DNA of 44,831 nt from Octopus bimaculoides. Lineage: Eukaryota. The stretch spans positions 8,638,793-8,683,623 of the forward strand of contig NC_069008.1 in NCBI RefSeq assembly GCF_001194135.2. Direction: 5' to 3'. The notes below the pieces were generated by a model. That model did no database searches and was not told where the DNA came from. It worked only from the letters and a program-made list of their open reading frames with translations. The position numbers and the translations under genes are program-made. Each line of letters begins with the position of its first letter. The stretch's first letter is position 1. This document shows positions 8,262 to 8,504 of the stretch, one piece after another.

Positions 8262-8374
8262 GTTACTGCTACGACCATTATAAGAGGTGCCGTAGATTGG
8301 CAGAGAAGGGAAAGTGTCTCACCGATATACGCTTCATGGAGTTTTCTTGCACTAAATCTTGCCACCTCTGTTGA
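8262..8374 (+). CDS. Terminal coding exon encoding a complete ShKT (ShK toxin-like) domain; rest of gene not found in window
   Basis: Pyrimidine tract and acceptor cctttatcttctcttttaaag|GT. Translation (x)YCYDHYKRCRRLAEKGKCLTDIRFMEFSCTKSCHLC* has cysteine spacing C-x6-C-x8-C-x10-C-x3-C-x2-C, with the CxD and CxKSCxxC hallmarks. TGA at 8372-8374; phase-1 acceptor. Confidence 0.9.
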
Positions 8375-8498
8375 AACACCAGTAACAGTCTTCTCCCTTG
8401 ATTGTTCAGCAAGAATTTCCACCCTACTGCAGTGCTGTGGCTTTCTGCAGTGAGATGTTTCTCAATATCACACTGACAGACATGTCTTGTGGGGCACG

Positions 8499-8504
8499 AA
8501 TAAA
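8499..8504 (+). promoter_or_regulatory. Candidate polyadenylation signal of the ShKT-containing gene
   Basis: AATAAA ~125 nt downstream of the TGA, just before a (GTT)n(CTT)n microsatellite. Confidence 0.5.

Follow-up and report, generated by a model that had tools for sequence, protein, structure and literature searches.

The DNA analysed here, referred to as the window, is a stretch of 44,831 nucleotides from the genome of Octopus bimaculoides. Positions are those of the window unless otherwise stated, and the corresponding position on CM046628.1 of assembly GCA_001194135.2 is obtained by adding 8,638,792. On the minus strand lies a gene for 4-hydroxybutyrate CoA-transferase, whose protein cluster includes O. 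bimaculoides XP_014774756.1. Six coding exons of this gene were located, at about 37222-37469, 35805-36025, 34009-34236, 33379-33537, 31918-32052 and 29322-29532, the last of them ending in ...ERLKTMPVP followed by a stop codon; the gene runs on past window position 44831. On the plus strand, convergent with the CoA-transferase gene and ~21 kb from its last coding exon, lies an exon of 113 nt at 8262-8374 (CM046628.1:8647054-8647166, plus strand) that encodes an ShKT domain.

The exon is preceded by a polypyrimidine tract and a 3' splice acceptor (acctttatcttctcttttaaAG, 8240-8261, plus strand), both read directly from the sequence. The tract consists of pyrimidines at 15 of the 18 bases before the acceptor, the AG occupies 8260-8261, and the exon begins at 8262 (acctttatcttctcttttaaAG/GT, the slash marking the junction). 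The reading frame whose codons run from 8264 is open only from 8240, being closed upstream by a TGA (8237-8239). Between that in-frame stop and the codon of the first cysteine at 8267 there is no AG other than the one at 8260-8261. It follows that this AG must be the acceptor if the domain joins anything upstream. The acceptor has A at position -3 (aAG), where C or T is preferred, and this counts against reading the segment as a terminal exon.

The coding part (8262-8371, plus strand) is made up of GT, the last two bases of a split codon, and 36 codons that together specify a complete ShKT domain (YCYDHYKRCRRLAEKGKCLTDIRFMEFSCTKSCHLC), an assignment based on Pfam, on the conserved cysteine, aspartate, glycine and methionine residues, on matches in the PDB and on a structural model. 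The intron phase at the acceptor is 1, and the split codon, NGT, would be read as Ser, Arg, Gly or Cys. The exon opens with GT TAC TGC TAC GAC and closes with TGC CAC CTC TGT TGA. The six cysteines of the peptide are spaced C-6-C-8-C-10-C-3-C-2-C, and the TGA stop codon (8372-8374, plus strand, read directly) comes immediately after the sixth. An earlier note on this DNA, made from the sequence alone, had described the acceptor, the 113-nt exon, the six-cysteine spacing, the stop after the last cysteine and an AATAAA, and direct reading finds that description accurate to the base. The same note had remarked that the exon is absent from the list of open reading frames, and this too is so: an ordinary list omits the exon because the frame measures merely 25 amino acids from its first start codon (TTG at 8297) and 44 amino acids from stop to stop.

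The 124 nt that follow the stop codon (8375-8498, plus strand) form a putative 3' untranslated region, which has an exon-like GC content of ~42% and no repeat copy elsewhere in the window. It leads to an AATAAA at 8499-8504 (plus strand), a candidate polyadenylation signal 125 nt past the stop. The signal is weak evidence by itself, since AATAAA occurs on the plus strand of the window at a density of 1.14 per kb, which gives a probability of ~0.25 for at least one chance occurrence within 250 nt. At least 23 nt 3' of the AATAAA, Tandem Repeats Finder and inspection of the sequence place a microsatellite, (GTT)9 followed by (TTC)24, at 8527-8622 (plus strand); a role as GU/U-rich downstream element is possible, by inference only. 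GC content changes from 22.9% in the 157 nt 5' of the acceptor to 45.1% in the coding part and 42.5% in 8375-8520. The step falls exactly at the acceptor, and the coding value agrees with that of the window's six confirmed CoA-transferase exons, 45-48%. The exon sits within a 517-nt segment (8105-8621) that is unique within the window and is flanked by two SINE-type copies, one on its left border at 7934-8104 (nine other copies in the window) and one on its right border at 8622-8834 (six other copies in the window); both are taken as context and not as parts of a gene.

Several lines of evidence bear on the identity of the encoded domain. The Pfam profile ShK (PF01549) matches the peptide with 24.4 bits (E 4.4e-5), above its gathering cut-off of 20.9, and the alignment joins residues 2-36 of the peptide to positions 2-37 of the 37 in the profile, in keeping with the statement of the earlier note that the domain is complete. 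In an alignment of 80 sequences, consisting of 79 database ShKT domains and the query, no sequence lacks any of the six cysteines (C2, C9, C18, C29, C33 and C36), conservation at D4, G16 and M25 reaches at least 90%, and none of these nine residues is missing from the window peptide. Searched in all six frames with a regular expression for the cysteine pattern, the window gave one real match, compared with 0.003 expected per Markov-shuffled window. A second match to the expression in the window was rejected as an artefact of a CA microsatellite. When a hidden Markov model (HMM) was built from the 79 other ShKT domains, with the query excluded, the segment containing the exon scored 54.5 bits and the runner-up among the 866 real stop-free segments scored 6.7 bits, while the maximum in 300 shuffled windows (219,514 segments) was 13.7 bits; this model is biased towards the query, its members being the query's best matches, and the Pfam score is independent of that bias.

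Structural comparisons agree with the assignment. The only matches to the peptide among PDB sequences are four ShKT structures (8SED, 2K72, 1BGK and 2MCR), which align end to end and are weak singly, with E values of 0.2-0.7. An AlphaFold2 (AF2) model made with the 80-sequence alignment has a pLDDT of 96.3. A Foldseek search of the PDB with this model gave 2MCR as the best match (TM 0.89, rmsd 1.0 Å), together with 2K72 (TM 0.81) and 2MD0 (TM 0.82), the rmsd values spanning 1.0-1.6 Å; the alignment consists of ShKT domains, so that the modelled fold is not independent of the family assignment. A model made from the single sequence was a helical hairpin without meaningful fold matches and was not usable for the fold. 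The window peptide is a bona fide, complete and intact ShKT domain.

The same domain was then sought in protein collections. When 1.84 billion cluster representatives were searched exhaustively with phmmer, no protein more than 50% identical at the domain level was found, with the caveat that a member clustered under a representative without the domain would go unseen. The search returned 83 proteins with E < 1e-3, all of which contain multiple ShKT domains and reach significance through summed scores, at 31-45% identity. The best identity for a single domain is 50%, shared by the protein P0041 and one domain of an Acanthaster astacin. P0041 was considered as an orthologue, as it shares the YCY start and the C-terminal position in addition to 50% identity; it was rejected because it comes from unspliced marine-metagenome contigs and is not from a cephalopod. 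The named top relatives are proteins of echinoderms, nemerteans, flatworms, crustaceans and diatoms, with no cephalopod among them. The collection includes proteins of O. bimaculoides, O. sinensis/vulgaris, Argonauta and cuttlefish and some cephalopod transcript-derived proteins, and no annotated octopod protein in it has the window's ShKT domain. An identical or orthologous domain would score far above all of the matches, so the exon belongs to no protein model represented there. Padded to 44 amino acids by read-through, the exon gave no candidates in a word-index protein search. This negative carries little weight because the index favours targets near the length of the query: in a control, a 72-amino-acid exon query recovered only proteins of 66-126 amino acids and missed a cluster of 487-amino-acid octopod orthologues that was found with a 366-amino-acid query. 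Exact look-up of a 73-amino-acid antisense frame and of the frame of a window exon found neither on record.

Upstream of the exon, no further exon or start codon was found on the plus strand in 1-8261, by searches that are insensitive to short exons and over a region in which 438 nt are N. A tblastn search of the window with all 83 ShKT proteins found the exon alone and no astacin, vWA, prolyl 4-hydroxylase (P4H) or second ShKT exon. None of the 85 stop-free plus-strand segments of at least 30 amino acids in 1-8261 resembled any part of a domain known to partner ShKT, and no CAP-domain exon was detected in the window, again with little sensitivity for short exons. A scan of 1-8261 for first exons, defined by an ATG, a hydrophobic stretch and a phase-1 donor, gave candidates only at 7282-7390; these signal-peptide-like sequences lie inside a SINE and microsatellite and were rejected. 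Pfam, run on the plus-strand frames of 1-8400 joined with X, returned a weak RVT_1 match alone, and its insensitivity in this form is evident from its having missed the known ShK domain as well. The tblastn, domain and first-exon scans thus bear out the earlier observation that no upstream exon is visible for 8.2 kb. Rfam and tRNA scans of the window found nothing.

Much of 1-8261 is repeat DNA. It contains RVT_1 fragments at ~1177-1600, SINE copies at 3594-4018, 7102-7576 and 7934-8104, and three N gaps, and some of its dispersed repeats (for example 4406-5371) have copies at positions in O. vulgaris and O. sinensis that are not syntenic. The earlier description of the region as almost all transposon therefore holds for its repeat content and is somewhat overstated in extent, the stretches 7577-7933 and 8105-8261 being unique. 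Reverse-transcriptase fragments occur on the plus strand at 17731-18297 (RVT_1, 45.8 bits) and at ~1117-1600, where the RVT_1 scores over ~1177-1600 are sub-threshold at 18.8-20.3 bits; the left fragment is followed by a 3' segment repeated approximately three-fold (2168-2969). The SINE-type family has ~10 copies or fragments in the 45 kb, among them 13805-13963, 25303-25485, 34966-35178 and 38775-39146 in addition to the three left of the exon, and copies with ~80-82% identity are also present in the O. vulgaris and O. sinensis loci. Direct duplicates flank two of the N gaps, 1716-1782 (duplicates at 1611-1715 and 1783-1887) and 5993-6002 (5954-5992 and 6003-6041); each looks like an artefact of assembly, an overlap left unmerged, with no real gap behind it. 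At 23183-23454, a 139-bp unit is present in two tandem copies with 93% identity.

Related loci were available for the part of the window around the CoA-transferase gene. An annotated O. bimaculoides locus of 84.7 kb covers 19.3-44.8 kb of the window, and the CoA-transferase gene is the only one annotated in it. Over window 19324-44831 its sequence is 100% identical to the window and has gaps at the same positions, which places the window in O. bimaculoides and bears out the earlier note's guess at a cephalopod. Loci from O. vulgaris, O. sinensis and Argonauta align to 22.6-42 kb of the window, the two Octopus species with 85-89% nucleotide identity. An intron-split CoA-transferase gene like that of the window is also found on a 209-kb contig from a metagenome-type analysis (ENA ERZ21867824, ctg118451l); it shows 90-97% protein identity and 77-80% exon nucleotide identity to the window gene, with introns approximately twice as long. 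The contig is eukaryotic genomic DNA, probably from a cephalopod or another mollusc, whose genes were called exon by exon as if it were prokaryotic. No ShKT match was found in the O. vulgaris, O. sinensis and Argonauta loci or in the ENA contig, and the 10-kb flanks of these loci stop at least 10 kb short of the exon, the three octopod loci ending at ~18-22 kb of the window.

The reading that we prefer, held on an even balance of probability, is that 8262-8374 (plus strand) is a genuine ShKT module exon and the 3'-terminal coding exon of a gene that is absent from, or truncated in, the protein sets. A phase-1 intron would end at the AG at 8260-8261, and the exon would supply the last 36 residues of the protein, amounting to one ShKT domain. 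Translation would halt right after the sixth cysteine, and an untranslated region of ~125 nt would reach the AATAAA. The 5' exons would be situated to the left of the window, on the far side of a retroelement-filled intron longer than 8 kb; a location within an assembly gap, such as the one at 3073-3433 named in the earlier note, is less probable. These exons would be expected to encode a signal peptide, and a catalytic or CAP-type domain is probable as well. Once the product had entered the endoplasmic reticulum, a disulphide knot (C1-C6, C2-C4 and C3-C5) would form, and the domain would serve a secreted protein as its binding module at the C-terminus. The unique acceptor, the phase-1 junction, the stop directly after the sixth cysteine, the GC island that extends to the AATAAA and the unique sequence between SINEs all support this reading, as do the identity of the domain and a module layout shared with annotated ShKT exons of a Tubulanus gene. 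Weighing against it are the lack of any annotated octopod protein with the domain, the failure to find an upstream exon in 8.2 kb and the ~25% expectation of an AATAAA by chance, together with the consideration that 37 codons can persist intact for a long time without selection.

A different reading, distinctly less probable though still substantial, is that the segment descends from a real ShKT-coding exon but has dropped out of any functional gene, or has never belonged to one at this place. The upstream exons could have been lost, or separated from it by rearrangement and massive insertion of retroelements and SINEs, and no stable spliced mRNA would be made. Such an orphan or pseudo-exon fits with the absence of the domain or a close relative from the 1.84 billion protein representatives, with the 8.2 kb of mostly repeat DNA in which no upstream exon was found, and with a Pfam score that exceeds the cut-off by only 3.5 bits; the CoA-transferase gene being the sole annotated gene in the 19.3-44.8 kb part of the window points the same way, for a part that does not contain the exon. 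The state of the sequence argues otherwise. The frame, all six cysteines, D4, G16, M25, the acceptor, the stop codon and the exon-like GC island are intact, whereas decay would be expected in a copy long dead: a cysteine, the frame or the acceptor should be gone by now, and that none has been lost argues for function. A copy that died recently, on the other hand, ought to be accompanied by a closely similar annotated parent or orthologue; the search found none above 50% identity. The lack of any protein above 50% identity among the 1.84e9 representatives likewise makes it unlikely that the exon stems from the recent, partial duplication of an annotated gene.

It is improbable that the exon belongs to a gene for a stand-alone ShK-like peptide, with two or three exons in all, of which the upstream ones would encode only a signal peptide and propeptide and the exon in the window the whole mature peptide of ~37 residues, comparable to cnidarian toxins of the ShK/BgK type. 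The exon does code for the domain alone and ends right after the sixth cysteine, its size fits the 35-37 residues of solved ShKT peptides, and it has a basic-aromatic pair (R23-F24) at the positions aligned with the Lys-Tyr pair of BgK. Against this, no upstream phase-1 combination of ATG, hydrophobic stretch and donor was found outside the SINE and microsatellite, the protein collections searched hold no such small protein, and the nearest relatives are all domains of multi-domain or multi-ShKT proteins. We know of no stand-alone ShK-type peptide from a cephalopod. Slighter still is the prospect that such an octopus peptide exists with the Arg-Phe variant of the pair, perhaps expressed in a tissue or at a stage that RNA-seq has covered thinly. 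As for a chance open frame with the cysteine pattern, descended from no ShKT sequence, it has next to no probability: 0.003 false matches per window would, by extrapolation, not be negligible over a genome of 2.7 Gb, but the idea is effectively refuted by a Pfam score equivalent to a per-model P of ~2e-9 (4.4e-5 divided by 24,736 models), by the presence of the conserved non-cysteine residues D, G and M and by an HMM score that no shuffled segment approached, and the ShK fold was recovered in the AF2 model besides.

If the terminal exon of a missing gene, as we prefer to read it, is expressed, it marks a gene, or the 3' end of a gene, that the current annotation of O. bimaculoides has missed. 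The cephalopod repertoire of secreted cysteine-rich proteins would then gain a divergent ShKT module, with no more than 50% identity to any of the 1.84 billion representatives, and this would be of relevance to studies of venom, saliva, immunity and the extracellular matrix. A venom, salivary or immune role for the product of this particular exon is pure speculation. Molluscs and other invertebrates have ShKT domains in great number, so one further copy is unsurprising in itself; its use is as an annotation lead. If expressed, the exon would also show that short, single-domain terminal exons in repeat-rich introns escape annotation that is based on open reading frames, and even annotation that is based on evidence.

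The literature searched on ShK and ShKT domains in octopus offers general statements only, such as those on an O. bimaculoides astacin with as many as four ShKT copies and on a gland protein of CAP type, known in part, from Hapalochlaena maculosa, the latter among the CAP-ShKT architectures described in molluscs (PMC6409789). The cysteine-rich domains at the C-terminus of CAP/CRISP proteins (pseudechetoxin, 2DDA; natrin, 3MZ8) match the AF2 model weakly, with TMq values of 0.62-0.63 and Foldseek probabilities of 0.13-0.30. The solved ShKT structures provide a closer comparison. They comprise BmK1 of Brugia malayi (2MCR), the toxin domain of MMP23 (2K72), AcK1 (2MD0), BgK (1BGK) and ShKT-Ts1 (8SED), and in the end-to-end alignments with 8SED, 2K72, 1BGK and 2MCR all cysteines of the window peptide are in register. 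Opposite the channel-blocking Lys-Tyr pair of BgK the alignment places Arg23-Phe24 of the window peptide, such that the canonical pair is absent and a conservative basic-aromatic pair stands in its place. In a gapless alignment with ShK, its K22-Y23 falls on the same two residues. Because Arg23-Phe24 occupies the positions of the Lys-Tyr pair, K+ channel binding by the window peptide is neither predicted nor excluded.

Unlike multi-domain ShKT proteins, the window presents a single ShKT domain, with neither a second copy nor a catalytic-domain exon found. C-terminal ShKT modules are known from the nas-36-like astacin of Acanthaster planci (XP_022083990.1), from diatom prolyl 4-hydroxylases and from a vWA-ShKT protein of Tubulanus polymorphus (XP_074654673.1). 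In several of the proteins retrieved, the chain stops at the last cysteine of an ShKT domain or 1-3 residues beyond it: P0027 (domain at 168-202 of 202 residues), P0039 (180-214 of 214), P0067 (142-176 of 176) and P0030 (553-587 of 588). The window peptide has in common with these modules the six-cysteine spacing, the consensus CxDxxxxCxxxAxxGxCxxxxxxMxxxCxKSCxxC and the extreme C-terminal position; in place of the consensus tryptophan before the alanine it has leucine (RLAEKG), as does a minority of ShKT domains. The Tubulanus gene also allows a comparison of exon structure. It has one ShKT domain per exon, the acceptors are phase 1 in all three exons whose junctions were read (ag/CT AAA TGT, ag/AA TGT and ag/AT GAG TGC), both clear donors are phase 1 as well, and the first cysteine lies 1-2 codons past the acceptor. 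The window exon, with ag/GT TAC TGC at its junction, has a layout equal to that of the Tubulanus ShKT exons.
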